Below, piece by piece: positions 8,299 to 63,067 of a DNA stretch of 64,000 bases (positions are counted from its first letter, which is position 1; every line of letters begins with the position of its first letter). Origin of the DNA: Zootoca vivipara (taxonomy: Eukaryota). The notes beneath the pieces were generated by a model, which made no database searches, was not told the origin of the DNA, and was given only the letters and a program-made list of their open reading frames with translations. Both the position numbers and the translations under genes were made by a program. Location: the NCBI RefSeq assembly GCF_963506605.1, contig NC_083282.1, positions 38,750,001 to 38,814,000 of the forward strand, in the 5' to 3' direction.

Positions 8299-20842
<12,544 letters not shown>

Positions 20843-22171: not shown

Positions 22172-22351
22172 TCAGCACCCTCCATTCTGACTCTGCTCTG
22201 AATGCACAGATCCATTCTTCAGGAGTTCTTTAGCGACAGGGCTGCTGGGATATAGCCGGGTAAAGCGGGCAAGTGCAAAGATAGGGAAGATGATTCGGTA
22301 GGCATTGTAATGCAGAGTACCAGATTTGTAGAATGCTCCAGCGATGTCACC
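22172..22351 (-). CDS. LSS: LSS-like exon 22 ([30 protein letters not shown]...QNGGC*)
   Basis: cctcag|GGT; TGA at 22174-22172; candidate minus-strand AATAAA at 21376-21371. Confidence 0.92.
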   Translation of the reverse strand, partial: GDIAGAFYKSGTLHYNAYRIIFPIFALARFTRLYPSSPVAKELLKNGSVHSEQSQNGGC

Positions 22352-25853: not shown

Positions 25854-28800
25854 ACCCGGCCTGAATCTATGCCTTCTGGACAATCTTCTACCAAAACCCC
25901 TTTACCGGGGTTCCCTTCATCCCGCCAGATGAAGGCGGTGATGCACCATTTCACCCCCTAAGAAACAGACCAGACATCCCCAAACTTCGGCCCTCCAGAT
26001 GTTTTGGACTACAATTCCCATCCTCCCTGACCACTGGTTCTGTTAGCTAGGGATCATGGGAGTTGTAGGCCAAAACATCTGAAGGGCCGCAGTTTGGGGA
26101 TGCCTGAAATAGACCCCAAATTCATCTTCAAATTCACCTTAGCCACTGAAAGTTGTGACAATTGCTATGAGAAGACAAAACCACCAAATGGGCCCAATTA
26201 GTCTGCTTCCTGGCCCTGAAAACGGTGGCCGATTATCTCCTCAGCAAGGTCCTCCATACACATTGCCCACTTACCTCAAAGGCAATGCCAATTTTTAGGG
26301 TGGGCAGGATGATCAGCTGCCAACTATGTTGCTGGCTCCCACTCCAGATGGCTTAAATACTCCAGCAGAGGACTGGAGTGAACCCTCAGTATCTCTCTCT
26401 GCTGCTGAAGCTCCACTGTTGGGCCAATTTATATTTTAAAAATTGACAGGCTTTCCCATCATCCCCTCTGGTCAGTTGAGGAAAACAATTGGCCTGCCCC
26501 ACCCAAGTCCCCCGAGGGGTTGCACTGGGCCACAATCATAGTCCGTATCAACATAGGACAGCTGACTGTCAACTACTGTACACTACAAGTGGTCCGCAGC
26601 ACTTCCTCTACTAGGATGACACACCAGCTGAAACAATGGAACAGCGTGTTGCATTAGCTAGTTCTCTCAAACTGCTATGTAGGAAAGACATTCAAAAGGT
26701 GAAGGTTTCCACTGCTCAGTCAGCAAGTCATTCTTTCAGAACGCTATGTATGCATTCAGAAACTCCGCCAATCAGTGCCGCAGTCAAGTTCAGTGTGGGA
26801 TATTTGTAAGCCACTCACCCTAACCAGGAGCCATCAGCTTTCTGCATTTTACGACAAAACTGCAAAGCCTTACTTAGAGTATCACTGGGAAGAAAAACAA
26901 AGGGGTCTTACATTTCAAGCTAAACAGCTTCTGGATGAGAGAATAATTAAGGCAAGCTCCTTGTAACAATGGCATTCAGTAACCTAAAGAAGCCTTCCAC
27001 TTTTTCAGAACTTGGTCCCACCCAAAACATTCATTTTGTGGCCTACTTCTTAATGTTTTAACAACGTTTGTGTTGCTATTGTGACCCGCCTTAGAGGAGG
27101 CTGTGATCCAGTAGTGGTTCCTCCCAGCCTCCCAGGTGATGGCTACTGGTAATTAAGATCAAGAGTGTTCATCATCAGTCTTTGTTTAAACCACCAGCAG
27201 CAACTTTACATAAGTATCACTTCTATGTTGGAAATAACATGTATGCTGTAAGTTACATGTACATATACATTTTCCAGAGGGGTAGCTGTGCTGGTTTGCT
27301 GCAGCAAAAACAACTAAGAGTCTTGTGCCACCTTAAAGCCTAACACATTTTATTGTGGCAAAAGTTTTTTATGGACTGGAGTACCCTTCAGATGTACCGC
27401 GTGGTCATTAGTTGGCAGGTATTTAAGCGGATGGAGGTATATGTATATATTTTAAATAATGACTGGAGTTGCAATCAAATATCAAAAAAATACAGTCTTT
27501 GACAAATTCAACTCCTGAACTCTTAACATGGAATAGTCTATTAGAATATAGAATTCAAGACTATAGAACAGGCATCCCCAAACTTCGGCCCTCCCGATGT
27601 TTTGGACTACAATTCCCATCATCCCTGACCACTGGTCCTCTTAGTTAGGGATCATGGGAGTTGTAGGCCAAAACATCTGGAGGGCCGCAGTTTGGGGATG
27701 CCTGCTATAGAAGATGAATATCATGATGTAACAATAACATCCTTCTCAGCTTCTGAGGATCTCACCCCAGACCTTTACCTGATTTCATCTTCCCGGTGAT
27801 TTGGGAATCTTTTCCCAAAATGTTTCAATCCCTGCATTATGGATGAAGTGCATTCTGTATAGGTGTGGTCTATCATACAGTCAGCTGAAAAACATAAAGT
27901 ATTTTACTTTATGTTTCAAGATGGTTTACAGATTTATAAAATCCTTGAAAATATCCTTTAAAACGGAGCCAAAACCTAGCAGTTTAAACAGCAGGAAGAG
28001 GGAAAAAAACTCTATAAAAGCAACAGCCACCAAAAGCTTATCAGGAAAACAGGCCATGCATTTTGTGCAGAGGACTATCAGCGAGAGCCTTCCTTGTCTA
28101 GATCAGGGGTGGCCAAGCTGCATCCAGAGGGTCACATACAGACCTCAGCCTATTTTTAGAAGCACAGGAAGAGCCAGAAGGGAGATGAAGATGGTGGTGG
28201 AGGTGAAACAGATGGGGCGATGTGAGAGGAAATCCCTTTGCAAGCAAACAGTTGAGAACCCTGCAAGAATTATTGGTCTCTCCCCAAGCAGCCTGCTGGG
28301 CACGGAGCAAAAGAGAGAGAGGAAGATAAAAGGGTGTGGCAAAAGGAGGGAGAGATGGCTCTGGCCACACTCACTGCTGACATGCAGTTCACAGCAGAAT
28401 GCCCTCAAGGGAAAGTGTCCCCCCCCCCTTGAAGGCTGTCATCCTGGGAGAGGTGGCTTCTAAAATAGACCCATGTGGTGTAGCTGAAAACCAATTAACT
28501 TGAACTAGGCCCATAGACTCATTGGCAGCCACTAAACACTACTTTGATGTTTAGACAAGTAGCTTGCTTCGCCCACAAAGGTTGAGTTCTGCAGGTCCAT
28601 GCATAAAGTTAGGAACTCCCAGAACCAGCCTCCACCCCCCCCCCCAATTTTATGAATTTTGCTTCCTTCCTAAAGCCCAGTAAGCACTTGCCCATCTCTG
28701 AGAAGCTGCGTAAGCCCAAATTCACAGCTGTGCATTTATTTATTTCTACCCAGCCACACAAAGCTGTGATTGTGTAAGTAAAATGAGAGTAAGACGTGAG

Positions 28801-31800
28801 TTACTGTGCATTATTGGCTCCCTCCTATCGTCTAGTGCAGGCATCCCCAAACCGCGGCCCTCCAGATGTTTTGGCCTACAACTCCCATGATCCCTAGCTA
28901 ACAGGACCAGTGGTCGGGAAAGATGGGAATTGTAGTCCAAAACATCTGGAGGGCCAAAGTTTGGGGATTCCTGGTCTGGAGGCATGCTGTGCCATTGTGA
29001 GCCAGTCACAGTTTGCAGACCACCTTCAAAGCCAGAGCCAATCTGCAAGGATTTGTAAAGAACCACAGGACACAAACAAGGGACTCTGCACAGCACAGCC
29101 TTGGTACCTTGCTATCCTGCACCGTTTATCTTTATTGGGATGCACTGCCACCCACATAATAGCCAAAAAAGAACATGTGTGATGTGAGGAGACCATTGAT
29201 TTCTAGCTAACTTTGTGTACCTGTTGCTCATTTGGGTTCTGAAATATACTCGGAGTCGAGAGTGAGTTTCATGCTCTTTATTCAGCTCATATTCATCAAG
29301 GAGAAGAAGAGAAGACGAATGGCTCTTTTCCCAAAACCATCTGCTTATATACATTATTTACACAATGGGCCTTGCGTGATTGGCTACTTCAGGGCTACAC
29401 CTGTGGGCCAATTATATTGTGGATTGACTTCTGCCTGCAGCCTGATTGGCTGCTCCTACAGGCCAATCAGGTAGCAGATTCACTTCTGCCAGCCGCCTGA
29501 TTGGCTGCTCCAGCAGGCCAATCAGGTTGCGGATTCACTTCCACCTGGAGTTGGATTGGGTAGCTCCTGCTGATTCTGAATCCTATTGTTCTAGGATTCA
29601 GCTCAGTACATAACAGGTTCCATGTTCAGAGCCACATGGACTGTCCGTATCACGTCATCTTTGTTCTGCCTATTCCAGAAACCAACCACCAGCCTGCCTT
29701 AGAACATCTCTCCTATCAGCACCTGCAGTGGACTCTGACAACGTGAACAATTGCCAAGGTCCTATGGCCAAAACAAACTGCCTTCAAACATGTGACTTCA
29801 GTTCATGGTCTCTAGCCCCAAAACTATGAAATAGGCCTTGCTTGTAAAGATGACCAGAATTCACAAAAGATTCCCATTTAAGTTGTTCTGATATCAAGGC
29901 TGTGTTCTTACCATATAACTCCGTGCAGTTCATTATCTCCAGTAGCCTACTCCCTCGTCTGGTTTCATAAGCAGCAAAACCGCCATCAGAATTTCTCATG
30001 CTCAGAATCTGCAAAAAAGTACAAGTGGGATGGGGGAGGGGGAGAGGGTTTAAGAACAGGCATGGTGTTCCTTGTCCTACTTGCAGAGGCACATGACTGG
30101 TCACTCCTGCACAACCCCACAAGCCACTCCTGTGCCCCTTTCACGCTTGCCTTTTTTTACAAACTAAAAAACCCCCCAAATGTTACAGAGACCCTTGATC
30201 ATTTTAGTTGCCCCTTTCTACCCAAGTGCTTTGATTCCTGCTGTTTCAGGCTTTGCCACAAGCACCAAATGCAATTCAGGCGCCATTCCACCCGGCTACA
30301 ATGCTGTGTAAAATCAGAGCCTGTGCTCTTGACAAACCAATCTCTTTATTTTAAGTGGCGCTCAACAAAAGGAGAGTGGCTCTCTGTACATATATGTAGT
30401 CGTGCCAGTTGGCCCTCTCTCACCATATTAGGCCAATGGAGAACTCGGTGGATGGGGAGATTCTGTTGTTCTAGCAAACCCTAGAAAGTGCCCTTGCTCA
30501 TCACGACTATGATGAGGATTCCAGGACAAAATTTGCTAATTTGCACTATTTCTACCAAATGTGATTTATCTCCAAATTACCAGTGTAGGGAAAGAGATTA
30601 ACTCATTATGTATTTGACTTCAAATTGATTACCGTAAGTAACGTGTAAGGATGCAATAGCTGCTTTCTAAAGAGCAAGATCAACAGTCCATCTGTTCTCA
30701 ACCCTAACGCCCAGTGAGCTTTCGATCCAGCTTACTGGGGGAGATTGCTCTCAGTCCCACTACATTGCATCCCTTTACCTGAGCTTCAGGAACTCAAACT
30801 TTAAGACTGATCATCCTTCACAGAGGATAAAATGCTGCCATAGGGACACTTCCACCAATTCTCTTAGCCTACGGCCCCACAAAACTCAGCACTATTACTG
30901 AATGCTAGATGACTTCAGTCTTCCCACAATAGCTTCCTCCTGCCTGCTTCCCATTTTCTCTTCTGGGCTTTCCCCCTTCTCACCACGTTGACAGCATCAA
31001 AGAGGCGCTGAGGTGCCACATGATCTTCTATGAAGGGGCATTTTTCCTCCAGCAGCATCAGTGTCCTCATGGCCTCAGCAGTGCAGTCAGACACTATCCA
31101 GTCATTCTCTCGAGTGCTGAAGGGGAATCCACCCTGGTAATTGAAGTGAATACATTAGGACTCCATTGGCAGCTGCCAGTGTAGAGGCATCTCCTCCCAA
31201 GCAATGCCCAAGAAAGCAATCAGGGAGTTGATGGGTGATCCATATTTCTTCTTCAGGATTCTAGATTAGATGGGCACTGGCCTAATGCAGCAGGCTCTTC
31301 TCGTGTCCTTACATTCTCAGAATTAACACTTAAAAGCTCTCTTTTTGCTGGCTATGTGTCAGACAGACAGGTCACGATTCTGGATGTACCTTGTTCATCT
31401 GGCGATAATATCTCTGGTAGTTAGGTGGGTTATCTACAACCTGAAAAACAGATTAGCAGCATATTAATAAAAGGCGATCAGATTATATTTGTAACCAGTG
31501 GGAAAGCCAGTGTGGCATAACAGTTTGAGTGTTGGACCTCAGAGACCAGGGTGCTAATCCCCACTGCCTCTCACCCTAGACTTCCTCACAGGGTTGTTGT
31601 GTGGATTCATTAAGGAGGAAGAAAACCATGTATGCCACCTTAAGCTCCTTGGAGAAAAAGGTGGGCTATGCAATAACTAAGAAACAAAACAAAACAAATA
31701 AATTAACTCAGTCAGAAATATGGCCTGTAATTTAGAAGACAGAATGTGGCTACAGCCTGATGCAATGGCAGCACATAGGGTTATGTTCAGTGCTAGTGCT

Positions 31801-34800
31801 ACTCAAAGTAGACTCACTGAAATTTATGAACTCAAGTTGGTCATGTTTATTAGCCTGAATGGGTTTGCTCTGAATAGGATTCATACTGGGTACAACCCAT
31901 AGTGCTGGTTGAGGTAAATTGCCGTAGATATACAAGGTTTTACACAGGACTGAAGCCACACTATAAAACCAAATTGATATTACTTGTCAAGGATCACATG
32001 GGCTTCAGATTAAAAACCTATTATTCTGTAGTCCTGCCATGACACATTATTCAGCTGAACGAATCTCATGTGATCAAGAGGCAGCTAAGCAACACTCTGG
32101 CTCTGCCTCCAAGGTCACACAGCATCTCATGACCACAACATCCACACATTAAGCTTTGCCTATGCAGGCATCCAGGTCTAAATGCATGGATATCAGAGGC
32201 AGGGCTGGGGGAAACCATACAACCTTGGAAGCTGTCCTTCAACATCTAGGTCAGGCATCCCAAAACTGTGGCCCTCCAGATGTTTTGGCATACAACTCCT
32301 ATGATCCCTAGCTAACAGGACCACTGCTCGGGGAAGATGAGAATTGTAGTCCAAAACATCTGGAGGGGTGAAGTTTGGGGATGCCTGATCTAGGTCAAGT
32401 AATGGCCCACTGCCTTGGATCCCCTAATAGCTCCTTCTCATGATGAAAGGGGCTCATGTTACTTTGCAAAAAGAGACAAGCGTTTTCCTCCTGATTGTTT
32501 TGCTGAGACAGCTGAAAGCAGTATTGATTCCCTATGTATATTATTCCAATATCATGCTTTACCTGAGAGGCTTTCAAGAATTCATGGGCTTTTTTCAGAC
32601 AGGATGCATAGTCAGGATTGTTCTGAACCCCAGCCTAGAAAAAGAAAGAAGTTATGCTTAAGAATTCTGACCCAGGAAAGTCACAGAGAAAATCTCAGAC
32701 ACTTACACAAAAGCATCACTTTGGACAGCTACAAAAATAAACGCAAGTTCTTGAGGGATAACTTCAGTGTTACACAAGGAATACTCAGTGTGTGAATTTC
32801 TGGATCTCATGTCATAAATTACCTGGAGAACCATGACAGGCATACAAGGTGTTCAGATCTCGTAAGGTGTGTGCTTTGGTTAAACACACACCATCTACAT
32901 GCCAGTTCATTCATCTAATATATATATATGTAAATGGAAATTATTATGGAGAGAACAAAAGTAGAATATTTGACAATATAAAATGGTACCTCCAATAAGC
33001 CTTGAATGGTAAATGATGTATCCCAGGTCTGTGATCCTATGAACTGATATAAAGAAAGGAAGAACAGTTTTGTCCTTTTAGATCAGGGCTGGAGAACCAC
33101 TAGCCTGGGAGCTGAATGCAGTCCTCTCTAACCAGCCCTTGGGATGCTTCCCCAGTCATGGCCACTTCCCAGCCTACAGCCTCCCCCACTGGCCTTGCTC
33201 TGCATCAATCAAGAACACTGGGAGTAAATCAGTAACTAAAGGGCTCCTCCACACTTTCGCTTGGCCCTTGTTTTGATTGTATTGTGTACTGATCAATTCC
33301 CCCCAAGTCCAATAGTTTTTCCTCTTGTTCTCTCAGTTAAGCAGCATGTGTTTTGGGGATTCTTGGCACATCATATAACATCTGAATCAGCATTTTAAAA
33401 AGGTGCCACATGACCTGGTGTTATCTTACATCTTATCTCCTAGCCCTAACCCTGGGGTGAAGCTACACATTATGCAGAAGATCCATGCCTGGATCTCCTG
33501 ATATTTTGATATTCACTTCAAATAAGCTGGTGCTGTCAGGCAGGGAGAAGACAGCTGAGCTTGAGAGTCACCAATGCAATGCAAATTGCAGCCCATAATA
33601 TTTCAAAACATATTGGTTCACACTATTGTACCTTTATTAACATACCATCTTGTCCCATCCTGCAGAGATATAAAAAGAAGAGATTATAGCAGTCACAAGA
33701 CCATGTAGTTACCTATCTGCATTGCATAATAAGAGACCAAAATCTTCCTGATATCTCTCCCATACAACACAACGAGTGAGCCACGGGTGTGCATGAGATC
33801 TGCCTATACAGTACTGCAAATAAGGATATGTTCACATCACTGGCCTAAAACGCAGCAAAGTCATTTTATCCCACTGCTTTGCAAAGCTGCATTTGCACAG
33901 GGTTGTTCACATCAGAGAGGGGGCAGAGATGTTTTTACAGAGTGTGCATGCCCTTTCTGGTTTCCCCACCACTGCAACCCCCTGGAACGCCTAGTGATGA
34001 AGCTGCCATCTGAGCATCTGTGCTCATCTGTGCACATACGACGGTTGTCGCAGGTAAACACACCATTCTGAAGTACGATGTGAATGTGCTTTATGTTTTC
34101 TAGTCTGATTGACCCTTTTTTGAGGAAAGATCAAGGTCTGCAAAACCACACTTATGCAAGACCATATTCAGGACACTACAAAGATGGGTGGAATAAATAT
34201 GCCAGTCTTACCAAAGGTAGTCATAAAGTCTGGAGATATGTTCTTGAAAAGCTGGAGAATTGGCTCCATCAACTTGCTTTCTTATTAGCATATGAAACAC
34301 TTTACAAATCTACAGGACAAAAGATATATCATTCCAGTTAGGAATTTTCCTCTGCTATACCTCCATGCTTAGCACAGTCATCTGTTGCATGGCTATGTCT
34401 CTGCATGTCACCAGCCCAACACAGAAACTCCTTCAATTGGGCAAAACAAGATCGCTACAAGCATAGCTCTACCTTTGGAAGTATACTGGTTTTGGGGGCA
34501 AATCTTCCTCAGGAGAAGGAACATATGCTGCCATCAAAAGTAACTTGTTCCTGATACAATTATTTCTGAAAGACATTCACAAAGGACCTACCGGACTAGA
34601 ATTGGTGGCATTTGAGAATATGTCATCAGCTTTGATTTGCTCATACATTTCTGCAATGGCTTTCTTTCTGAAACTGGTGAAATGGTATCTCTCGTACAAA
34701 TTTAAGGTAGCTGCAGAAGGAATAAGAGACACTATGAACATCGCAATCATGTTAATACGGTTCTATCTTCCTCGTGCGTTTTGGGCTGCAATCCTCCATG

Positions 34801-37800
34801 CAATTACCTGGAAGAAGGCACCATTGAATTCAATGGCACTTGCTTCCAAAAGATACTGTATTTTGCTCAAAATAGAGGCAGGATTTCAGCCCCCAAATTT
34901 CAAAGATGATTTCAGGGGGAAATCTGCAAAAGGAACATGGGTGTGAACAAGGGGTTTACCACAGATGGGTACCAGTGGTTTAGGGTCATTTGTTTTTTTT
35001 CCCTTTCCCTTTGCCCTTCTAAAAGTGAGGAGCTTGTGTCCCAAGCCACCATGACCCCATTGCCCCCATTATAGGGAAATAACCAGACAGGACAAAAAGA
35101 GTAAATGTAAAATGGGTCAAATAGGCCACAAATTTATTGATGTGATGTGAATGTTAGCCATAGGCATTGGGTATATCATTTGAAGTCCAGCCTACCAACT
35201 GGAAGTGTTTCTAGGGTCAGCCCAATACTATGACCTACCCCAAATTGTGGTACCCCCCCCAAAAGGGTCCCTGGTCAATGAGTGCTATGGCCCTAACCCC
35301 CGCCTGGATGTTCAGACAGAAGCAACTCCTTGTGGATCCCTTTAATGGGACACCCTCTTTCATGGAAGGGCTAATACCCATGTGTGGACCCAAGTGACAC
35401 CACTTAATAACAACAACAATAATAATAATAAATTTTTATCTATACCCCGCCCTTCCCGATTCAAAAACCTGGGCTCAGGGCGGCTAACAACAAATTTAAA
35501 ACACTTAATTGTAATACAACATAAAAGCAACATAAAATACAGTATAAAAGCACGAATAACAATAAAATTCAAGTTCAAGAATCAATTTGGGGGAAATCCA
35601 TCCAATAAACATTAGATAGTCACCAGAGATAGCTGGCTAAATTAGACCTATCTGGGCCAGCAAGGAGGCCAGGAGAGAATTAGCTGTGGGGTCCCAGAGC
35701 GGGTAATCTTCATAAAAGAGGGGATGGGGGAAGAGAAGGGACTATGTTTAGGGCACCTTGTCTAGCCCCTCTCCCTTTTCGGGGTAAGCAGAGTGGATCC
35801 TAAAAGGTGCTGCTCAGGCATGGATACAGCTGCCGAGCTGCTCAACTGCCTCATTCCTTGAGTCAGAATGACTGAATCTGTATCCACCGCCCATGTGCCG
35901 GTTCATGACTAGGGGCTTCCAGATTTCACGATTCTGCCCCCGTTACCATTTGCTGATCGCCATGGGACTTTGGGGGTTTGGGTCGGGTTTTTGGAAGACG
36001 CCTGTGCGTGAATTTGTTTTATGTGTGTAGATCAGTGCACACTGACCAACGCACAGTCTTCGCAGTAGGGTTCTGTTCCGAGGGCATGAAGTAGTCCTAT
36101 CTGCTGCAGCCTTCATCCACCTTCACAGCCATTGCAACATGCCACTTGTTATCATCCACCTGTTCTGCTGTTGAGGACTTCTTGGATCATTCTTTGTCTA
36201 GCTCCTTCACTTTGACCTTACTGCCTTGGGTGACCCTGCTGGGAGTATGAGATTCCTGACGGCTCACAAGGGTCATAGGAACATGCAAGCCCACTCACCA
36301 CGACAATGTGATGATCCAGCGAGTGGGACTACCCTGTAGTCTGACAGGCAAAACCCTAGTGATGATCACCATGGGTGGTTCTAAGACTACAAAACCCATA
36401 ATGCCATGGCATGTGTCCATAGCATGGTTCAGGCCTCTTGCTCACAAAGCAATGTTCTTACTTGTATTTGCTACAAAGGTTTGTATTGTGTTTGTTCCAG
36501 CTAACAAGCTGTGATAATATGAAACTTGGAAGATGTATGTTTCCATGGATATGTGTCTGCGTCAAGGACATGCAAAGCATCCATGTCTTATTCCTCAGAC
36601 AATGTGTTTGCCTATAACAACAGAAGTCTCTTCCTCTCTTTCTCTGTGCCAAGTAAACCCTAGGAAACCTACATTGAAGGCCTGAACTCCTGGAATAAGA
36701 CTTGCCAATTCCTACATCACTCACCATATGCGGCATCCAGCATCCAGCTGTGTGCAGCTTGCAAATCGGTTTCGTGAATATTGTTCCTCTGGGCTTGCCA
36801 ATCAATAGTGGAAAAGTCCTCCACATAAATCTCCTAGGAGGAAACCATGAAGTGAAATGACTTTCATAGTAAAGAAGAAGCAGGATACTAGTGTACTTGA
36901 CAAATGCCATTTCATGGCTTTAAAAAAACCAAGAAAATTCATGCTAGTGTGGCAAAATCTGCTCTGTACCCATATAACACTTCTCCCTGTGTTATGGCAT
37001 CAGCTTTCATGGTCCTCTTCATCCATTTTTATACTTATATGAAAAGTGGTATGTCTTAAGAAATAATATTAATTAATTAATTAATTAATTAATTAATTAA
37101 ACACTAGAGGAGGAAGAGGAGGGTACTCCATAGGAGATTAATGGTTCAACAGTTCTTCATTGATTTGTTTTTTAGTAGTTCTGAAGAGGGGAGGAGAAAA
37201 CACCTTTTACCACCCAAAAAGAAAGGGAGAAAGAAATTAAAAGATGCATTAAAAAGGGGGAGTCTGGTATTACTGTGATGGAGGAGGCAACATGGGTGTA
37301 GTCTGTCAGTTTTTAGGAGAAGAGGCAAGGGTCTAAAAGCAATACTCTGTGGAGCATGAAGCACAGAGTCATTAAAATAAATTAAAAGAAAAGCATGGAA
37401 GGTGAGAGACATATGATTTGGGAGGGTGATACCATGGGCACCATCTCCACTCCAAATTCTACCCTCCCAAAGTTGCCCTCCCCTGTGGAATAGGGATGGC
37501 CAAGTGGCATGTTTCCATGCCCCCGCCTCTCTCCAAAATAAATATTCCCATGGCATTTTTAAACACTGTTGCTCTGAGCTTGACTTCTGCCTTAAATGGA
37601 AAATAAGACATCCAATTTAGCCTTCTCCCTGTCAGATACAAGCAAGCAATCTCCCAAGTGCAGATACGAGGGAGTACGAGGGTCCTACTCTGACCGAGGA
37701 TGATGGGATGTTTGGAGAATGCTGCCTTGCCTGTCTTAGACTCTGGATCAATTCATCTTCTTCCATAGTCAGGCGAGAGGCATAGCAGTAGCTCATCACA

Positions 37801-40800
37801 AGGGTGATATGGCGAGCATGACACCAGTATGTTGAAGGATGTGCTGGAATCCATGTAGGGAACAGCCTGTTTCAGAAAGATGGAAGAAACAGGTTCATGG
37901 AAAACAATGTCAGGAATCCTGGATATAGGGGTAAAACTAAGGGCAGGCTATATTGCCCTTCATCCGAGGATCACAGGGCAGTTTATGGTATAACACAATA
38001 AGAAACAAAACAATAATTCATCCTCCACTAGATTTTTTTGTGAAAACTAGTATCTTTTGCAACCTTCTGGTTACTTCTTTCTTAAAACCAGAGCTTTTTT
38101 CTGCGGATACACAGGGGTATGCATACCCCTAAACATTTTGTGAATCTAAGTTTGGCCTCACTGAGGGCAGTATTTCAATATGAGCAATATGAGTAGGAAA
38201 ATGAGAGTACCCCTAAACATTTTTTAGGGGAAAAAAGCACTGTTTAAAACAGTCCTAAAATCATTTCCCAGGCCTATGGGCTGCAGTTTGAGCTCCATTT
38301 GCGGCTTGCAATTTTTGCTCATTAACATGCGCCATATGTCACATCCATGACATGTGTCTACTCACCAATCAGGCAGAGGTATGGCAACTAGCCATACCTC
38401 ACTCTGACTCATGAGTAGATGTTCTTCATCTGAGTAACCTCTACATGAAATCCTGTGAGGAACAGGTTCTGTCACAAATGGACACGAAGTAGTGAAGATT
38501 CATATGAATGTGTCTATTTCCAAGTCATTGCTGTTTCGTGAAGGATCCGTCTACTGTGCAATACTGTTGCCGCAGAGACCTTTCTTTGGCAATTCATGAT
38601 TGGCAGGGTGGGTTGGGGATGAGAAAACTTTAGGACACATACCATAACTCAGGAAACAGTGAATTCATTCCCTCCCAGCTGTACAAATTCATAGTAGCCA
38701 GCCAAACTTTGCCCAGATGAGGGATTCCAAGAGCACCACCTGGAAAGAGAATTATCAAAGTCTTTGTTTCCATAGACTGAAGGGGCAAAGTCAAATAAAC
38801 CTTTAATGAAAACCTAGATATGTTTATAGCCTTGTGTGATTGAAAGCTCAACTTGTTTAGAGTTTAGTGATGCAATGCCTCAGATTTCCACCAGAGTGCT
38901 GTGCCGCAGCCTCCTTTTGATTGGTTGTGGGTACAGGTAGCCAGAGGGAGGTGGTGACAGCACTTGCCGTGGGCATGAGAAAAAAACAGTTAAGGGATTG
39001 GAGTTCTGGCATTTAGCTGCATAGTAGTATAGCTCCTGAGCTGTGTGTTAAATTCACTCTGTAGTCAGAGAAAGAAGTCTCTGAACTTAAGTTTGAGAGA
39101 CAGTGATTAGCGCATTTTAAGAGTATACAGACAAGAGAAAACTGGGAAGCTGAATTGGGAACAGGAGAAGTAGAATTGTGAGAGGACATATTATTTGGAT
39201 TCTCAATTCAGTAAGAAGGGGAGAGATCTTCTTGAAAGAGAAGAATCCCAGACCAGTCAGAGGGGTGAGCTGATCCCCTGGTCTGTTACACTACTAGAGG
39301 AGCCTCACGAGTAAGATTTATAGAAGGTTGGGAAACTGACAGAAAGTACCACCCTGAATTACATCCTTAAGGACTGTAATTCATGGAGATCAGGCTGGTG
39401 TTTTTTTACCAGGTAGATATATGAAAGATAATTTATGAAACATTATTGATGTGATTGAATATCTAGAAGTTAGAAATGATAAGCAAGCAGCTTTGATTTT
39501 TATTGATGCAGAGAAAGCGTTTGATAATATATAATGGACTTATATGAAAAACGTAATTGAAATAATGAATTTTGGACAGGTCTTTGCTAATAGTATTGAG
39601 GAAATTTATTCTGAGCAACAGGCTAAATTAATAGTAAACAATACCGTTACTGAAAAATGTAATATAATAAAGGGAACAAGACAGGGGTGTCCATTGTCGT
39701 CCCTGTTATTTATTCTGGTGTTAGAGCCTTTGTTGAGAAAGATAAGAACAGATGAAGAAGTCAAAGGCATCACAATTGGAACTAGGTCATGCAAACTTAA
39801 GGCATTTGCAGATGATTTAGTATTAATGGTAGAGAATCCTTTGGAATCGGTACCAAAAGTATTTGAGAAATTGAATGAATTTGGCCAAGTGGCAGGGTTA
39901 AAGTTAAATAAAGGAAAAACAAAAATGCTGGTTAAAAATATGACAGAACAAAATAAAAATGAATTTGAACAAATAACAGAATTAAAGATAGAAAAGGTGG
40001 AATATTTAGGGGTCTGGTTAACATCAAAAATTATAAACTTTTTTCAAGATAATTATGTAAAAGTATGGAATGATATCAAAAGAAATATGGAAATATGGGG
40101 TAGAATGAACTTATTTTTTTATGGGAAGAATCTCAACAATAAAGATGAATGTGCTGCCAAGAATGTTATTTTTATTTCAATCAATTCCGGTAGCCTATGG
40201 AAAAGAACACTTCAAACACTGGCAAAGAGATATATCTAAGTTTGCATAGCAGGGGAAGAAACCAAGGATTGAATTTAAATTACTGACAGATGTAAAAGAA
40301 AGAGGGGGACTTGCTCTGCCAGACTTAAAATTATATTATGAAGTATCCTGTATTTGTTGGCTTTTATAGAATGGATGAGTTTAGAAAATCCAGGCATATG
40401 AGATATGGAAGGATATGATAATAGATTTGGGTGGCATGCTTATTTGTAGTATGAAAAGGTGAAAATACATAAAGGTTTTTTGAATCATATTGTAAGAAAA
40501 TCATTATATTATACATGGGGGAAGTATAAGAATCTATTGGAAAATAAGACCCTGTGGTGGATAGCACCACTTGAAGTATTAAAATTAAATATGGAAAGAG
40601 GGTGGTTAACTTACAGAGAGTTGTTGATAGAGGAGGAAAACCAGTTGAAACTGAAGAAGTATGAAAATATAAAGCATTTGTTTTCTGACTGGCTCCAATA
40701 TCATCAACTAAATGATATATTTAAAAGGGATAAAAAGTAGGTTTTGGGAAAGAAATCTCAAGACTACAAAAAGATCTGTTGGAGAGTAATGAAAAGGTTC

Positions 40801-43800: not shown

Positions 43801-46800
43801 TCTGTGGCAACCCCCCCCCCCAGGCAGGCCCCAACCTCCACTTGGCAATGTTGGTTCTTTGGTGGGGATTTTTTTTGGGGGGGGGGTAGTGGTGCTAAAT
43901 GGTAAAGTAAAGCCCCAAGTGTGTTGCTGTGGGTTATCCCCCTCCCCGGGCCTAGTGGAGGCCTGTCAGCCTGTCAGGGGCCTAAAACAAAGGCCTAGAT
44001 AAAATGGCTGGCTTGGTGTGTTTCAGTTGCTTGGTTGATGATGATGTCATTCGGTTTGTGGGTGTGGCTTAGATTTCTCAGGAAGGGAGGGGGTGGAGGA
44101 GGTTACAACGCCACTTGAGGGCGCTGTTTGAATTGGTGGGAAAGCATTTCTGTACCTGCGCAGGTGTGTGATTTGAGGGATTTTTGCCTCCAACAACGCT
44201 CTAGGAGTGGCCTGGATCGTTGTGTCCAAATTTCAGGACGATCGGTCAAGCGGTTACGGAGAAAAGTGGAACCCCGGATTTCATGATTTTTACATTTTTA
44301 TATATATAGATATTTTATCACTGCATTTGTGCTTTACGGAGTGGTACAAAACGGCCCATGTCCCGACCCTCCCAAGAGTTCCCAATACAGTGGTACCTTG
44401 GGTTAAGAACTTAAATCGTTCTGGAGGTCCGTTCTTAACCTGAAACTGTTCTTAACCTGAGGTACCACTTTAGCTAATGGGGCCGCTGCCGCACAATTTC
44501 TGTTCTCATCCTGAAGCAAAGTTCTTAACCCAAGGTACTATTTCTGGGTTAGCAGAGTCTGTAACCTGAAGCGTCTGTAACCTGAGGTAACACTGTATAA
44601 TTGTTAGAGGAGGAAAAATCAGGAGGGAAGATATGACCAGCATCTTCTGTTTGATCATAGAAATGGTGTCCATTTGCCAATCTATGNNNNNNNNNNNNNN
44701 NNNNNNNNNNNNNNNNNNNNNNNNNNNNNNNNNNNNNNNNNNNNNNNNNNNNNNNNNNNNNNNNNNNNNNNNNNNNNNNNNNNNNNNNNNNNNNNNNNNN
44801 NNNNNNNNNNNNNNNNNNGCTCCCAAATAACTGTACAACATCAGGACTGCCAAGTTTTGCCTGGGCACTACGCTCGAGCAAAATGGATTGATCCAGCCCT
44901 GCCAGAGAGTTCTGCCTTACCTTTTTTGTGGAGATTTATCCGAGCCCGCACTACATTTGGATGGTCAGGCCCAAGTCCAAGGATTCGCATAGCTATATAG
45001 CTGAAGGTTGTGCCTAATACTGTTGACTGTTCTGTAAGATGGCTACCATAAAGAGAGATCAAAGAGCCATTAGAAAATAGACCAGAGTGTTTGGATGTCT
45101 AGAAACCTGTTTGAATTGTTTAGTTTCCATTAACTTAAATTCAAAAACTTCTCTGAGAATTTGTCAGAATACTCCAACAATACCCAGTCAGCTAGCCATT
45201 AGCCAGGCTACCACAGAATACCTACTTTTGTTTTCTATTTCCTTTTTTTAAAGTAATGCCTTAATGGAGGACATGTAGTGCTTTGAAATGTTTCTTTTCA
45301 GGAGACAGCATGGGCTTGAGAGCAGCTCATACAGCCGGAATACCAGATGAAATTCCATTCCAAATAAATAAGAGCTGATCTTGGTTAATGAGAATGTAGA
45401 TTCTGAATTCAGATTCAAAGCTGAGTCAAACCCCGAACTATTTTGTGGTTTGCTATTGGTTTGACAGGATACATTTGGATGGAGGCAACCTGGCTTCCCC
45501 AGACCATTTATCAGTTGTAATACTTCCTACAGGTGGTACTTTTTAAAGGCAAGAGGGATGTCAGAAATCATGTCTTCATTATTGTTGCCTCTCTCCACCC
45601 CTCATGCCACAATTCTATTTTTCTCTGCCACAGCTGGGCAGCTTCAGTACATGCTGAGTCCAGCTTGCATTTTGGTCATCTACCCTGCTGCCCTGTCCGC
45701 ATGGTGAGTATTGCTCACAGTCAAAAGACAGCAGAATGCAGAAGTGATTTAAAGTAGCCTTCATGGGGGAATTGCATCATGGACCAGCCCAAGACAAAGA
45801 TATGCAGAATTAGAGCATCTCTTCCCAGGCCACTCTAAAGAAGCTCACACCCTCCTTGGACTACTCACAAACTCCAGCCACCATCTGGAAGCTGTTGTGA
45901 GAAGATGTAACGCAGGAGCTCTCTCTCGTACTCTTCTGGCAGTGAGATCTTGGCAGCATAGCATGACATCAAAAAACCTGTTTGATTTTTTTTAAAAAAG
46001 ATAACAATGTATAATACTTCACAATCTCAGTTTTGGCTTGATTTGTTTGGATACCGCCTGTTTGGATATCGAAATGTAACTTGTGCTTTTGTACCCCTGG
46101 TAGGTAAAAGGTCAAACATAACAAGATTTAATTGGCTTTTCCAATTGCCAAAGCCATGTTAAAAACTAGGTTATGGGACATAGAGCGCCAGGAACTGACT
46201 TTAGCTGCAAGAAAAACATGTTCCCCTCTTTATTTCCAACTCTCTTGGGCGCAGGAATCTAATTCCAGCTATTTACAATTTCCGTTTAACCCACAAGAAA
46301 GAAGGGCTTTCTCACTAGCTAGGTTCAGTGCTAACCCCTCTAACCTCCTCTGGGGTAGGTTCGCAGGGACTGCTGAAGGAGACAGGATCTGCCCATGAGA
46401 CGCCCATCTGGTTGAAACTTTAGCTCATATAGTCCTTAAATGTATGACGATATCCGCCAGCAATACCTGGACCAACTATGTGTTCCAAAATGGAAACCGG
46501 AGATAGAGGTTATAGGGGGAGAGACCAGGAGCGTACCAAGACTGTAGCTAAGTTCCTCTATTTGATCTTTTGCCGCCAAAGTACACTACAGGATCCTGCC
46601 CCCATTGGAGACCCACAGAGGTGAAATAGATTGCTGGCCTTCTCCCCCTTTTGGCAAGTGACTGTACTGATAAGTTGGCGACGTGATTGTACAGGACTAT
46701 GTATTTTAAATGTTTGAAAATTATGCCAATAAAGGTTTTGATTGATTGATTGACAAGATTTAATTATCTAGCAAGTTTAGGCAAAAGATAATCACTTCTG

Positions 46801-49800
46801 CCCCCTCACTAGAAGGTGCATAATTTCATTCTGGACTATTCAATGTTGGATGCTGCTTACAGTAATTGCCTGGAGCTCTATGCACTTCCCCTGTGTGGTG
46901 AACCACTGAACAACAGGCAGCAGGATTCTCAGTGAACTATCTTCAAATTGCTGGTCCAGGTGGGGATTCAGAGGGGTATTACCCAATCCTATCAGGTGAT
47001 GCCAGAGGGCAAACCTAGGACCTTCTGCATGCAGGGACTGAACTGAATTCAGCTTCTCTCACTTCATTTCAAAGTTTGGTTCACTTTTTTGCATCAGTTT
47101 GTGATTGATTTATTTTTAAGTCTTCATGAAAATTCATCATCTCAATATACACATTTTTGCAAAGCTATTATTATTATTGTTGTTGTTGCTGCTGCTGCTG
47201 TTGTTACTCTAGTATATGGCATTCTACACATTATGTAACTGGAGAAGTGCACTACAAAATTCAGTGAATAGCAAATGTCAATGGATGCCTGTGCTTCAGT
47301 TCTCATACTGTTTCCGAAAGCACTAATAAAGCCTTTACTGCAAACTAAATCAAATTTCTCTCACATCTCTATCTCTACGCAAACCACATTTATTTATTAA
47401 TATTTATTTATATACCACTTCAGTGTAGTAAAGCTTCTAAGTGGTTTACAAGAAATATTAAAATTTTCTGTAAAACAGTTAAAAATAATACAGATTTATT
47501 TTTTTTAAACCATCTGGTCTACCACATCCCCATACAGCTATGTGATGCCAACAATGAGCAATATCCTGTGCAATGGAGTCAATGGATTACCCCCCTGCTT
47601 GGAATGCACTGAAGTGGTATTCTGTTTTGTGAGAGAGGCTAGACTTAGTTTTCCAAAACAGGTGGGAATTGTTTAGTTTAAAATATTCTGAGAATGAAGA
47701 CTATTCCAGAAAGTTGACCAAAGTCAGTCTGAACTGGCTTGAATAAGATAAACACCTCTGCTTACCCAAGAAGAAGAAAACCTATTTAGCTGAATTACAG
47801 TTAAATTCACAGGTGAGATCTCTTTGTTCCTTTCATAGCTAAAGGCTTACAGGTCCATTATTCTAGATTATTCTGACTTCATTGGAAAGCGCGATAGCTT
47901 TTGCTTTGTTGCAGAAAATCCCAAGTTGGATCCTGGGCATAGAGCTGGGGAAACCAAAGAGGGTTGCCAGCAGTTCAGTGTTCAGATAGATGTGCCAGTG
48001 GGATAAGGCAGCTTCCTATGTTATTATGATGAACAGCTTTGTAGAGGCAAAAGAAAGACAACTAATTTAAGCAGTTTCAGGGGTTTCTGAAAATGTTCAC
48101 CTATTTGTGCCTAGCCTATCTGGTAAAAAAAAGAAAAGAAACAGATTTATAGAAAATATACAGGGAGGCCAGTTAATGTATTTGTGGTAAGTCTGTTAGC
48201 GTCCCTGTACCTGGTCCAAGAGCGACGACACCAGAGCACTCCATAGGCCAATGGCCATCTTCCGCTTGCAGGCCAGAGAAGAATTTAATCGCTTTCTGGA
48301 CTGCTTCCTGGGCCGTATTGGCTTTGGGCAAGTCTGGAAAGAACTTACTCTGTAAAACAAAATGGGGGAAGTAAGAGAAATGTACAGAAATTAAAAAGGC
48401 TGGCTACAGTACAAAGTACCGGTATGCATAGTGTTAACTGTCCTGCTACATATAATGCAACTGTTTGGTCATTTTAAAATAAATATAGCCTAGAGACATC
48501 TCTGAGCTCTTAGATCAGTGATCCACAAGGGACCAGAAGATCATGTAGCCCAACTCCCTTTCCACAAGTAAGAACCCAACACTGACTCTGGCTTGCCGAT
48601 GAACTCACTCAGCACAAGCTCAGATAACAATCACAGAGCAGCTACCTTGTAGAAAGTGATATCAAAGTTATGTATTCCAGTATTTCCAGTAGATCGGCAT
48701 ATTCATCTTATTCAGGGTTGTCTGTCTTTCAAGTATAAGATAAGCCTGACCAAGTGGCAGGCAGTTGGACTAGATGACCCTCACGATCCCTTCTACAATC
48801 TATGATTCAATGAAAGCAATAACCAAGCTCCTGTGTTCCTGAGGTGTCAGAAAATGAGAAGCCAAAAGAAAAATGACCCAGCCCTTGGGAATCTGCAGCA
48901 AGCCAAGCCCAAGCCAGCAGTCCTCATGCCCTCTACTCCTTTTGTAGACTTTCAGTGTTGTACCATCTGTTATCATTAAGCCACTTACAATGTCCAGCCC
49001 TAAAGTGTAAGCCTCTAGTGCGTTCTGTTCACGGGCACATTCTTCATTGTCTGCCACGTAGTACCATTTATGCCGCCCTTCCACGGAGCTGAATCGCCAG
49101 CGAGTAAGATCAGTTTTGGGTTCTATTTCATGTGCACCTTTTCTTCTGCGCAGACATCTACCAAAGAACACAGAGGGGGGAGTTTGAAACATGCAGGCAG
49201 ATTTTCAGTTTGTCATCCTGCCACAGGAAATTAATCTGAAACCAATTTTGTGCTCATTCCTGCCAAATGTGAGGGACAGACTTTTCTATTGATTTCAGTG
49301 GGTCTATTCATGACTAATTTGTCCACTGATTTCAGTGAGTCTACTCTGAATATGGCATATTCATACACCACCCATAGATCCTTTGCTTTTTCTAACTAGC
49401 TCATTATGGAAACACTTCCTATCGCTTATCCATCGGCTGCTTCCCAAGAATGGCTCCTCTTCTTTGTGTGCAGGTAAGCCTACCTGACCCTACCTGGCCA
49501 ATCCCCCTGGCACGCCTACCTCTGGCTGGATTGGTCAGCTTACTGAGTGGGCGGCGACTCCAGCCTCAGGTAGCCAGTGCCAGCCTCCAAACTTCTAGAA
49601 CTGCCCTAGGGATCCCAGGGGGGGCTGCACGCGACTGCGCAAAATGCGCCTCCCCTTTATGTTGGATAAGCGGTCATTCTCTCCAACCATATTTTTGTCC
49701 CAGTTGTTCAGAGCACAAAGAGGGATGGTTTATAAGTTTCTTTTATATCCTGCTTCATTCCAATGACAGAACTCATTTTAGGGTTCTTAAGTATGGAAGT

Positions 49801-51030
49801 CACAGATTGATCAACAGGACTTATTGCTGCAATCTCTTGCATACCTTTCCTGGAGGAAAGCCCCAGGGAAACAGTGGTACTTCCTTCCGAGTAAGCCTGC
49901 ATAGGATTGTCCTAGTAGACTAAAGGTAAAGGTAAAGGGACCCCTGACCATTAGGTCCAGTCGTGACCGACTCTGGGGTTGCGCGCTCATCTGGCCGAGG
50001 GAGCCGGCGTATAGCTTCCAGGTCATGTGGCCAGCATGACAAAGCTGCTTCTGGCAAACCAGAGCAGCACATGGAAACGCCGTTTAGCTTCCCGCCATAG
50101 CGGTTCCTATTTATCTACTTGCATTTTGATGTGCTTTCGAACTGCTAGGTTGGCAGGAGCTGGGACCAAGCAACGGGAGCTCACCCCGTCACAGGGATTC
50201 GAACCGCCGACCTTCTGATCAGCAAGCCCCCTAGTAGACTATTCCATGTTTAAAATTTAGGGGTGATTTTCTCATAATTGGCCTATTATACACCTCCACT
50301 ATGGGACCCGGGTGGCGCTGTGGGTTAAACCACTGAGCCTAGGGCAGTTCGAAAGCATGTCAAAATGCAAGTAGATAAATAGGAACCGCTACAGCGGGAA
50401 GGTAAACGGCGTTTCCATGTGCTGCTCTGGTTTGCCAGAAGCGGCTTTGTCATGCTGCCCACATGACCTGGAAGCTATACGCCGGCTCCCTCGGCCAATA
50501 ATGTGAGATGAGCGCGCAGCCCCAGAGTCGGTCACGACTGGACCTAATGGTCAGGGGTCCCTTTACCTTTACCCTTATACACCTCCACTAATTGAACTGT
50601 TTTCGACATCAATAATTGACAAATAATAAGGACCACTGATTCAGTTCCAAAGAGAGTTAATATGTATGTACTGTGCTGCACTCTGCTTTAGTCACTAATT
50701 TATTTGCAGCCAGATATTTTGCCCATCTTCTGCTTATCCCCTTCATTTATCTAATTGGGTTTGCTAAACTTAACATCAACACATCCAGTTTCATGTCATT
50801 TATCAACTGTATTTCTGAATCAAGAAAAGCCAAAATGCTGCCTTTTTATTACTTAAATCATCAGGTTAATTGCCCTTCCCATCTTATTTCTGCAAATGTT
50901 TCCTGTAATAAAGCTTGCTTAATCAATATGAATGATGTCAAGCACTGGCACACTTTGTTATTTTATTTAACCATCATCCTAATTCAAAGCATATAGATTG
51001 CACACGATGTACTTACGTCCCAGCAGACAT
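22172..51030 (-). CDS. LSS: Lanosterol-synthase-like 2,3-oxidosqualene cyclase (divergent LSS paralog), complete 22 coding exons, 748 aa
   Basis: All 22 exons located by hand. The spliced frame is 2247 nt with no internal stop. Exon boundaries follow the human LSS protein, with length changes only in exon 2 (+1 codon), exon 12 (-1 codon) and exon 22 (extended). QW repeats ([30 protein letters not shown]) and DCTAE are present. The symbol denotes the family; orthology to canonical LSS is doubtful. Confidence 0.93.
23206..23284 (-). CDS. LSS: LSS-like exon 21 ([10 protein letters not shown]...GEWPQ)
   Basis: ttgcag|A...CAG|gtgtg; 79 nt. Confidence 0.92.
23442..24005. repeat. ~215-bp direct duplication (23442-23654 and 23786-24005) in LSS-like intron 20
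   Basis: gttcccaggattctctagggaaagtcatgtg...gggcagatcagccc occurs twice. Confidence 0.9.
24149..24319 (-). CDS. LSS: LSS-like exon 20 (EACKEV...[13 protein letters not shown]...LMAVR)
   Basis: ttctag|G...AG|gtaag; 171 nt. Confidence 0.93.
24658..24738 (-). CDS. LSS: LSS-like exon 19 ([26 protein letters not shown])
   Basis: gacag|G...GG|gtgagt; 81 nt. Confidence 0.93.
25808..25855. repeat. (CA)n microsatellite
   Basis: Direct reading. Confidence 0.95.
25971..26106. mobile_element. hAT MITE
   Basis: TIRs; imperfect TSD aaacagac/aaatagac. Confidence 0.8.
26819..26884 (-). CDS. LSS: LSS-like exon 18 ([22 protein letters not shown])
   Basis: cccag|T...GG|gtgagt; 66 nt. Confidence 0.92.
27568..27704. 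mobile_element. hAT MITE
   Basis: TIRs; TSD ctatagaa. Confidence 0.85.
27779..27884 (-). CDS. LSS: LSS-like exon 17 ([14 protein letters not shown]...EDEI)
   Basis: tttcag|CT...AG|gtaaa; 106 nt. Confidence 0.92.
28838..28974. mobile_element. hAT MITE
   Basis: Same ~136-bp family, TIRs. Confidence 0.8.
29912..30008 (-). CDS. LSS: LSS-like exon 16 ([15 protein letters not shown]...NCTELY)
   Basis: ttgcag|ATT...G|gtaag; 97 nt. Confidence 0.92.
30984..31133 (-). CDS. LSS: LSS-like exon 15 with catalytic motif ([22 protein letters not shown]...DAVNV)
   Basis: accag|GGT...GTG|gtgag; 150 nt; DCTAE at 31074-31088. Confidence 0.95.
31390..31440 (-). CDS. LSS: LSS-like exon 14 ([17 protein letters not shown])
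   Basis: ttttcag|GTT...AAG|gtac; 51 nt. Confidence 0.92.
32252..32387. mobile_element. hAT MITE
   Basis: TIRs; TSD atctaggt. Confidence 0.85.
32563..32634 (-). CDS. LSS: LSS-like exon 13 (AGVQNNPDY...LKASQ)
   Basis: ttctag|GCT...CAG|gtaaa; 72 nt. Confidence 0.92.
32990..33043 (-). CDS. LSS: LSS-like exon 12 ([18 protein letters not shown])
   Basis: tatatcag|TTC...GAG|gtacc; 54 nt, one codon shorter than human GTNGSQIWDTAFAIQALLE. Confidence 0.9.
33632..33659 (-). CDS. LSS: LSS-like exon 11 (MGQDGMLIK)
   Basis: ctgcag|G...AAG|gtac; 28 nt. Confidence 0.88.
34212..34309 (-). CDS. LSS: LSS-like exon 10 ([10 protein letters not shown]...YDYLW)
   Basis: ctgtag|ATT...TG|gtaag; 98 nt. Confidence 0.92.
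34592..34710 (-). CDS. LSS: LSS-like exon 9 (TLNLYE...[13 protein letters not shown])
   Basis: ctgcag|CT...CCG|gtagg; 119 nt. Confidence 0.92.
36725..36833 (-). CDS. LSS: LSS-like exon 8 ([12 protein letters not shown]...AAY)
   Basis: cctag|GAG...G|gtgagt; 109 nt. Confidence 0.92.
37731..37866 (-). CDS. LSS: LSS-like exon 7 ([26 protein letters not shown]...SLRQ)
   Basis: aaacag|G...CAG|gcaagg (GC donor); 136 nt. Confidence 0.9.
38643..38739 (-). CDS. LSS: LSS-like exon 6 ([13 protein letters not shown]...FPELW)
   Basis: ttccag|GT...TG|gtatg; 97 nt. Confidence 0.92.
39380..41829 (+). mobile_element. Degenerate L1 LINE ORF2 (RT to CCHC and 3' UTR) in LSS-like intron 5
   Basis: [33 protein letters not shown] and CWRC..H motifs with stops and frameshifts. 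Confidence 0.9.
41186..41343. mobile_element. Tc1/mariner-pogo-type MITE nested in the L1
   Basis: TIR CCGTGTTTCCCCGAAAATAAG/CTTATTTTTGGAGAAACACGG, TA flanks. Confidence 0.8.
41830..41960. other. Assembly gap
   Basis: N run. Confidence 1.
42402..44310 (-). mobile_element. Non-autonomous Helitron with internal minisatellites
   Basis: Minus strand starts A|TCTATATATATAAAA and ends CAGCTAG|T with a short subterminal hairpin; inserted between A and T, no TSD. Confidence 0.75.
43400..43915. repeat. ~160-bp unit tandem repeat (about 3 copies) inside the Helitron
   Basis: gtaaagtaaaaccccttgcagtgtaggggcctacataaatcaaagg...ctccacttggcaatgttggttctttggtgggg repeated. Confidence 0.9.
44388..44596. mobile_element. 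Tigger/pogo-like MITE
   Basis: TA|CAGTGGTACCT...AGGTAACACTG|TA. Confidence 0.75.
44687..44818. other. Assembly gap
   Basis: N run. Confidence 1.
44921..45042 (-). CDS. LSS: LSS-like exon 5 ([11 protein letters not shown]...LHKK)
   Basis: ggtag|C...AAAG|gtaag; 122 nt. Confidence 0.92.
45869..45977 (-). CDS. LSS: LSS-like exon 4 (FLMSCYAAK...QQLPDGGWS)
   Basis: aaacag|GT...TT|gtgagt; 109 nt. Confidence 0.92.
46134..46752 (+). mobile_element. Non-LTR retrotransposon 3' fragment (RTE-X-like)
   Basis: [25 protein letters not shown]; AATAAA then (TTGA)n tail; 13-bp TSD acaagatttaatt. Confidence 0.75.
48211..48349 (-). CDS. LSS: LSS-like exon 3 ([10 protein letters not shown]...[20 protein letters not shown])
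   Basis: ttttacag|AGT...CCAG|gtac; 139 nt. Confidence 0.92.
48989..49157 (-). CDS. LSS: LSS-like exon 2 (CLRRRKG...YTLGLDI)
   Basis: ggtag|ATGT...ATT|gtaagt; TDLTRWR and GRHKW motifs. Confidence 0.92.
49921..50230 (-). mobile_element. Sauria SINE
   Basis: (AAAGGT)n tail; TSD cctagtagacta. Confidence 0.85.
50303..50575 (+). mobile_element. Sauria SINE
   Basis: Head GGGACCCGGGTGGCGCTGTGGGTTAAACC; TSD ttatacacctccacta. Confidence 0.85.
51017..51030 (-). CDS. LSS: LSS-like exon 1 (MSAGT)
   Basis: gaagATGTCTGCTGGGAC|gtaagt; 14 nt, matching human MTEGT. Confidence 0.8.

Positions 51031-57418: not shown

Positions 57419-63067
<5,649 letters not shown>

Follow-up and report, generated by a model that had tools for sequence, protein, structure and literature searches.

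The stretch of Zootoca vivipara DNA analysed here (contig NC_083282.1, positions 38,750,001 to 38,814,000; 64,000 nucleotides (nt), hereafter the window) carries an oxidosqualene cyclase (OSC) gene on its minus strand, from 51030 to 22172. The gene has 22 coding exons, presumably the same number as human lanosterol synthase (LSS), and its coding sequence (CDS) of 2,247 nt encodes 748 amino acids (aa) with no stop and no frameshift. The third exon has a Cys codon in the place of Tyr98 of human LSS. Taken together, the observations below probably describe a complete, neofunctionalised LSS paralog with a changed product, predicted to be not lanosterol but another triterpene alcohol.

Full-length OSCs, among them the Capsaspora LSS (P0017), served as tblastn queries to map the exons, and the boundaries were then fixed by a search for junctions that have AG/GT ends and preserve the frame. 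Three small exons were located by eye, and the 14-nt first coding exon at 51030-51017 was added afterwards; joined to 49157, it gives the canonical LSS N-terminus MSAGTCLRRR. The splice sites are usable at 42 of 42 positions, and the 21 introns are GT-AG throughout except for one GC-AG intron, which begins at the exon 7 donor (CAG/GCAAGG, minus strand, 37731-37729), the sole non-GT donor. Two runs of N (41830-41960 and 44687-44818) are both intronic and were left unfilled in the model. A tblastn search of the model against the 64-kb window revealed no further OSC copy or fragment. The exons are as follows.

51017..51030, minus strand: coding exon 1, 14 nt; encodes MSAGT; ATG preceded by A at -3; donor GTAAGT
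48989..49157, minus strand: coding exon 2
48211..48349, minus strand: coding exon 3, 139 nt; Cys codon and loop 96-103; next splice present in the X1 contig
45869..45977, minus strand: coding exon 4; QQLPDGGW, the first QW-type motif; 45977 spliced to 48211 in the X1 contig
44921..45042, minus strand: coding exon 5; weak SQHop_cyclase_N match
38643..38739, minus strand: coding exon 6; carries W192L (IPHLGKVW)
37731..37866, minus strand: coding exon 7; H232 kept; C233A, Y237T; GC donor
36725..36833, minus strand: coding exon 8
34592..34710, minus strand: coding exon 9
34212..34309, minus strand: coding exon 10
33632..33659, minus strand: coding exon 11, 28 nt; MGQDGMLIK
32990..33043, minus strand: coding exon 12; completes the 380-382 loop with exon 11; W387 kept
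32563..32634, minus strand: coding exon 13
31390..31440, minus strand: coding exon 14
30984..31133, minus strand: coding exon 15; GGFPFST; F444, V453, D455, C456 kept; C449N, G450D
29912..30008, minus strand: coding exon 16; Y503 kept; T502A, F521Y
27779..27884, minus strand: coding exon 17; I524C; C533 kept
26819..26884, minus strand: coding exon 18; QW motif
24658..24738, minus strand: coding exon 19; W581 kept; S580R
24149..24319, minus strand: coding exon 20; QW motif; SQHop_cyclase_C match
23206..23284, minus strand: coding exon 21
22172..22351, minus strand: coding exon 22 and stop; F696, Y704 kept; N697Y, C700G, A701T, I702L, S703H, W714F

The predicted protein belongs to the oxidosqualene/squalene cyclase superfamily (PF13243, PF13249) by its domains, full-length homology, catalytic acid and QW motifs. 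Pfam SQHop_cyclase_C is matched by the exon at 24151-24318 with 48.6 bits (cut-off 26.1) and SQHop_cyclase_N is matched weakly by the exon at 44922-45041. QW repeat motifs, including RQTSIGEW, the catalytic acid Asp455 with Cys456, and the TECTS motif (Cys533) are all present.

Exon 3 (minus strand, 48349-48211) was recognised as an OSC exon in the translation of 48190-48352 and is followed by a GT donor. In a phmmer search of all PDB chains, it aligned without gaps to residues 62-103 of human LSS (1W6K) with an E value of 5.9e-11, and in the aligned human segment DGHWTGDYGG the position of Tyr98 is Cys in the window protein (residue 99 of the 748-aa model; codon TGC at 48238-48236, minus strand). 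The anchors DGHW and PG are equally spaced in both proteins (TGDYGGPLFLL lies between them in human LSS), and the positional homology of the Cys to Tyr98 is therefore unambiguous. A 154-nt Logan contig from run X1 joins 45887-45975 directly to 48209-48273 and skips 2,233 nt whose ends are CT..AC, that is GT..AG on the minus strand, at exactly the predicted junction 48211/45977. This contig has no mismatches to the window across the Cys codon and no differing letters in 48209-48273, and the codon is thus no artefact of this one assembly. The sequence-only reading, which had proposed the replacement of Tyr98 by Cys, is borne out by the ungapped alignment, the TGC codon and the X1 contig. The interval that it gave for the motif, 48211-48253, covers the Cys stretch plus the first base of a split Gly codon but omits the motif's D and G, which lie at 48259-48254.

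The change is not confined to one residue. Loop 96-103 reads MECSGVVA in the window protein and GDYGGPLF in LSS, with seven of eight residues different. Columns 97 to 101 are Asp, Tyr, Gly, Gly and Pro in each of 105 vertebrate LSS, Tyr98 thus being invariant, and GDYGGP is also found in the Capsaspora LSS and in two more full-length OSCs (P0004, P0018). Among 64 phmmer matches to exon 3 there was a single Cys-type relative, P0002, a 52-aa open reading frame (ORF) on a 2.5-kb Logan contig that reads HWPAECSGVLTLAPG. The two sequences share the core ECSGV and differ in its flanks (M/A, VA/LT, G/A), a pattern suggesting constraint on the new loop itself, whether in another species or in an older copy. 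Word searches with exon 3 returned no candidate and with P0002 returned only P0002 itself; such searches cover proteins of similar length only and are uninformative on full-length relatives.

Across its whole length the protein is a strongly diverged relative of vertebrate LSS. The comparison set came from a word search with the Capsaspora LSS, which gave 120 OSCs, almost exclusively animal LSS, and human numbering was transferred via an alignment of Otolemur LSS to 1W6K. The 748-aa model can be aligned end to end to 113 animal LSS with 57-61% identity, two turtles and Anolis being the best, and its terminal branch in the tree is 1.08 substitutions per site long against a median of 0.12. At least 98% conservation among the 105 vertebrate LSS was found at 349 columns, and the model departs at 99 of these; the corresponding figures are 72 for the Capsaspora LSS and 14, largely owing to N-terminal truncation, for the vertebrate LSS that deviates most.

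In human numbering, W230, H232, I338, W387, F444, V453, D455, C456, Y503, C533, W581, Y587, F696, Y704 and Y707 are kept. The changed residues are G96M, D97E, Y98C, G99S, P101V, L102V and F103A in loop 96-103; W192L, C233A, Q235H and Y237T in the 192-237 region; G380F, T381I and a deleted N382 in the 380-382 loop; C449N, G450D, T502A, F521Y, G522A, I524C and S580R between 449 and 580; and N697Y, C700G, A701T, I702L, S703H and W714F in the C-terminal part. About two dozen departures are taken by us, from motif context and the general layout of 1W6K, to line the cavity or lie just behind it, among them loops 96-103 and 380-382, W192L, C233A, Y237T, C449N, T502A, F521Y, I524C, S580R and the segment 697-703. 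The 380-382 loop reads LIKF-IGSQ against MQGTNGSQ in LSS; it is one residue shorter and has gained a Phe, and Thr381 is, like Tyr98, present in 105 of the 105 vertebrate LSS. In short, conservation covers the epoxide-opening acid, the dyad of His and Tyr and the principal cation-stabilising aromatics, and much of the putative lining and second shell of the cavity has been replaced.

Thoma et al. (2004), who described the human OSC structure, reportedly proposed that Tyr98 enforces the boat conformation of ring B. None of the literature examined establishes a residue that decides between chair-boat-chair and chair-chair-chair folding. The equivalent in AtCAS is Tyr118, in a G116-D-Y118 motif that is the same as the GDY motif of human Tyr98, and it is one of four residues that differ between cycloartenol and cucurbitadienol synthases, being Tyr in the former and Leu in the latter (10.64898/2026.05.26.727834). 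The single mutant AtCAS Y118L makes cucurbitadienol and cycloartenol, which are both protosteryl (chair-boat-chair) products; Tyr118, Tyr410 (human Thr381) and Tyr734 (human Tyr704) form a hydrogen-bond cluster that tunes which late cation is quenched, and product choice within the protosteryl-type OSCs is directed by the plant positions 118, 410, 477, 531 and 609 (10.64898/2026.05.26.727834).

The equivalents of these five positions in the window protein (98, 381, 449, 502 and 580, assigned by motif matching) all depart from LSS. Within the cluster of three, two members are altered: Tyr98 is replaced, and the 381 loop has acquired a Phe. This new Phe of the 380-382 loop may partly fill the space of Tyr98, as the plant work puts the loop beside this Tyr. 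The sequence-only reading had concluded from the loss of Tyr98 that a chair-chair-chair fold was plausible, a step that is not supported, given that AtCAS Y118L and the Leu-bearing cucurbitadienol synthases give protosteryl products. Since these enzymes stay protosteryl, a B-ring boat is compatible with loss of the Tyr, whose effect appears to fall on the late steps, those of the cation and of deprotonation. A product that is changed but probably protosteryl-derived is favoured because the cluster and the equivalents of 477, 531 and 609 are changed.

A scheme for such an enzyme can be proposed. After duplication, the OSC fold and the proton-donating machinery (Asp455, Cys456, Cys533) would have been kept and the wall of the substrate cavity largely rebuilt, Tyr98-to-Cys being one of about two dozen putative cavity departures. 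The protein would still take 2,3-oxidosqualene, or an analogue close to it, as its substrate, and cyclisation would begin with protonation of the epoxide. The altered cluster of Tyr98, loop 381 and Tyr704, with the distal cavity, would then change the reach and end point of the cation cascade, and the product would most likely still arise from the protosteryl cation. Catalytic activity, substrate and product are what we infer from the sequence; the product is probably not lanosterol, and Tyr98-to-Cys alone does not identify it.

Several points weigh against the proposal of an active, retuned paralog. Expression rests on one contig of low depth (4.75), and the status of run X1 as RNA is guessed, its 43 Mb of contigs fitting a transcriptome better than a vertebrate genome. 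No exon reads were found in two raw RNA runs from the same organism as X1, each sampled at about 6%, and expression is therefore low or tissue-restricted. The GC donor is without RNA support at its junction. The substitutions S580R and W192L might impair catalysis rather than retune it. P0002 could be another paralog of the same genome. Finally, the status of the gene as an extra copy is drawn from its divergence and its locus.

Among the other explanations, the one that survives best, although we think it unlikely, is that loss of Tyr98, the shortened 381 loop and an LHY-containing C-terminal segment together put ring B into a chair and lead to a dammarenyl-type triterpene, in convergence on plant non-sterol OSCs. 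That plant non-sterol OSCs lack this Tyr was stated by the sequence-only reading and is confirmed by TwOSC (PDB 8j5z), which reads DGHWPAENGGVS, and by the beta-amyrin-synthase-like P0012 (HWPAENAGP) and P0025 (HWPAQNAG), all three with Asn at position 98. The window protein resembles these enzymes in having no Tyr at 98 within a P-A/M-E-x context, since P-x-E-(not Tyr) is found as P-M-E-C here, P-A-E-C in P0002, P-A-E-N in TwOSC and P0012, and P-A-Q-N in P0025. It also resembles them in the short, Phe-bearing 381 loop (LIKF-IGSQ against MQSF-GSQ in P0025 and P0007) and in the LHY of the C-terminal pocket strand (TLHY..FALA against CMLHY..WAIA in P0025). The likeness thus extends over three separate active-site segments, which is striking.

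These resemblances are set against several other observations. Cucurbitadienol synthases, with Leu at position 98, remain protosteryl, as does AtCAS Y118L. The equivalent of Y503 is Trp in P0025, P0038, P0012 and P0007, whereas the window protein keeps Tyr (GGFAAYE). P0038, the sole plant sequence showing the 232 motif, has MWCFSR (Phe), whereas the window protein keeps His (WCHAR). Tyr at 232, as in MWCYCR, is the usual form in plant dammarenyl-type enzymes. The mixed signature recognised earlier is thus upheld, with H232, V453, Y503 and D455 remaining sterol-type. The window protein moreover derives from a vertebrate LSS and has common descent with the plant dammarenyl-type enzymes only through the ancestral OSC.

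We consider it improbable that the protein is no longer a cyclase, whether the gene was inactivated recently and is still intact in appearance or encodes a pseudoenzyme kept for binding or regulation. This would be consistent with the one GC donor, the charged Arg beside W581, the loss of W192, the two RNA runs without reads and the position of the gene within a recently duplicated, possibly unstable segment. It has to contend with an intact 2,247-nt ORF with 42 of 42 usable splice sites, a spliced contig, and the retention of the catalytic Asp and both of its Cys partners. Neutral drift to the present divergence would also bring many stops: when the CDS was randomly substituted to 20% amino-acid divergence, none of 300 runs was stop-free and the mean was 9.5 stops, and the actual protein differs from every LSS compared at about 40% of its residues.

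A pseudogene was rejected on four grounds: the ORF is intact, the splice sites are usable, the simulation gave no stop-free sequence and a spliced contig exists.

It is likewise rather improbable, and slightly more so, that the gene still encodes a lanosterol synthase, as a redundant or tissue-specific copy in which many substitutions are tolerated. The features of LSS sensu stricto that are kept are the His232-Tyr503 deprotonation dyad, Val453 and Phe444, and retention of D455, C456, C533, W387, W581 and F696 also speaks for this explanation. The features without a match are Tyr98 in GDYGGP, Thr381 in MQGTNGSQ and the near-invariant core, where alteration of 99 of 349 positions exceeds that of the Capsaspora LSS. 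Because Tyr98 and Thr381 are conserved throughout vertebrate history, they appear to be needed for normal LSS function, and both are changed.

Finally, an error of sequencing or assembly, or a rare allele, can practically be dismissed as the origin of the Cys, since the independent run X1 has identical letters across 48209-48273, the entire loop rather than a single base is altered, and the fragment P0002 carries the same Cys.

The preferred reading, an LSS paralog with a changed product, can be compared with known systems. With human and other vertebrate LSS (EC 5.4.99.7; 1W6K) the window protein shares fold, family, 57-61% full-length identity, QW motifs and DCTAE; unlike them, it has rebuilt loops 96-103 and 380-382 and is altered at 99 of the 349 near-invariant sites. 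A precedent in animals is given by the parkeol and lanostadienol synthases of sea cucumbers, which are LSS duplicates in tandem with new products (PMC9236903). Within 5 A of lanosterol, these enzymes depart from LSS at residue 444 alone, where F is replaced by L or Q (PMC9236903). The window protein, in contrast, keeps F444 and alters many other putative cavity residues, and it belongs to a vertebrate, not an echinoderm.

Cucurbitadienol synthase (CpCPQ) and AtCAS Y118L resemble it as protosteryl-type OSCs with a non-aromatic residue at the Tyr98 equivalent. CpCPQ is changed also at 116, 531 and 609, and the window protein at 96, 502 and 580. The plant enzyme differs in having Leu rather than Cys, in lineage, and in keeping the length of loop 410.

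The top BLAST match was a Mauremys mutica "lanosterol synthase-like isoform X2" (P0176), which carries F444L, G380S, N382S and V695L. It differs from the window protein in being barely diverged, with 94% identity to Lepidochelys LSS, and in keeping Tyr98, and the two have only L108F and G509S in common. The F444L of P0176 is the change that makes parkeol synthases in sea cucumbers and Gemmata. P0176 may represent a second, independent diversification of reptile OSCs.

To our knowledge, animals have been taken to have a single OSC, for sterols, with the sea cucumbers as the only characterised exception. Full-text literature searches revealed no description of a vertebrate OSC/LSS paralog. The chances seem about even that the gene is the first vertebrate OSC that is not a lanosterol synthase, a lineage-specific and tandemly amplified LSS paralog that would make a specialised triterpene scaffold and possibly converge on plant dammarenyl-type chemistry. 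If true, this would imply an unrecognised vertebrate triterpenoid pathway, in defence, signalling or skin or gland lipids, and would indicate a so far unsought triterpenoid in a vertebrate. An intact, spliced paralog that rewrites Tyr98, Thr381 and some two dozen putative cavity residues and keeps the core would be a natural experiment on how the cavity controls the product. The pair of Cys99 and Tyr would also bear on the proposal that Tyr98 enforces the boat, which has already been questioned by the plant Y118L data.

In the tree, the window protein falls among vertebrate LSS at a position that is unresolved. The approximately unbiased (AU) test rejected neither a grouping of the window protein with squamates (p 0.316) nor a single clade of all canonical vertebrate LSS without it (p 0.323). 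It carries three of 17 residues diagnostic of turtles and one of seven diagnostic of squamates, an uninformative tally. Its C-terminal extension loosely resembles the tails of sauropsid LSS, which, with a slightly higher identity to LSS of turtles and lizards, hints at a reptilian host.

The OSC gene is flanked on both sides by a segmental duplication in the same orientation (9000-19198 and 57419-63067), which is 94-97% identical in several blocks and contains indels. This fits a tandem unit of about 48 kb, possibly with another OSC copy past the end of the window.

Two matches of short sequences to sequencing runs were also observed. A 31-nt piece at 46723-46753 (AATAAA followed by TTGA repeats) was found in reads and contigs from all four runs with non-matching flanks; it is a short repeat common to unrelated transcripts and not intron expression. 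The small, transcriptome-sized runs X2-X14, from five other organisms (B-F), contained 5-9% of the sampled 31-mers of 22000-24800, in the 3' part of the gene; either a repeat common to these genomes or orthologous exons in closely related species could account for this.

A TPR-like gene lies tail to tail with the OSC gene and is seen as long plus-strand ORFs at 8224-9120 and 20324-20842 with weak Pfam TPR_1 and TPR_8 matches; the label TTC22 for this gene could not be confirmed. The 6-kb intron between the exons at 44921 and 38739 contains a reverse-transcriptase ORF on the plus strand at 39544-40236 (RVT_1, E 7e-18), and the stretch around it is A+T-rich and strongly G-skewed (40001-42000, GC 0.31). 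Another retroelement-like ORF lies on the minus strand at 13857-14564.

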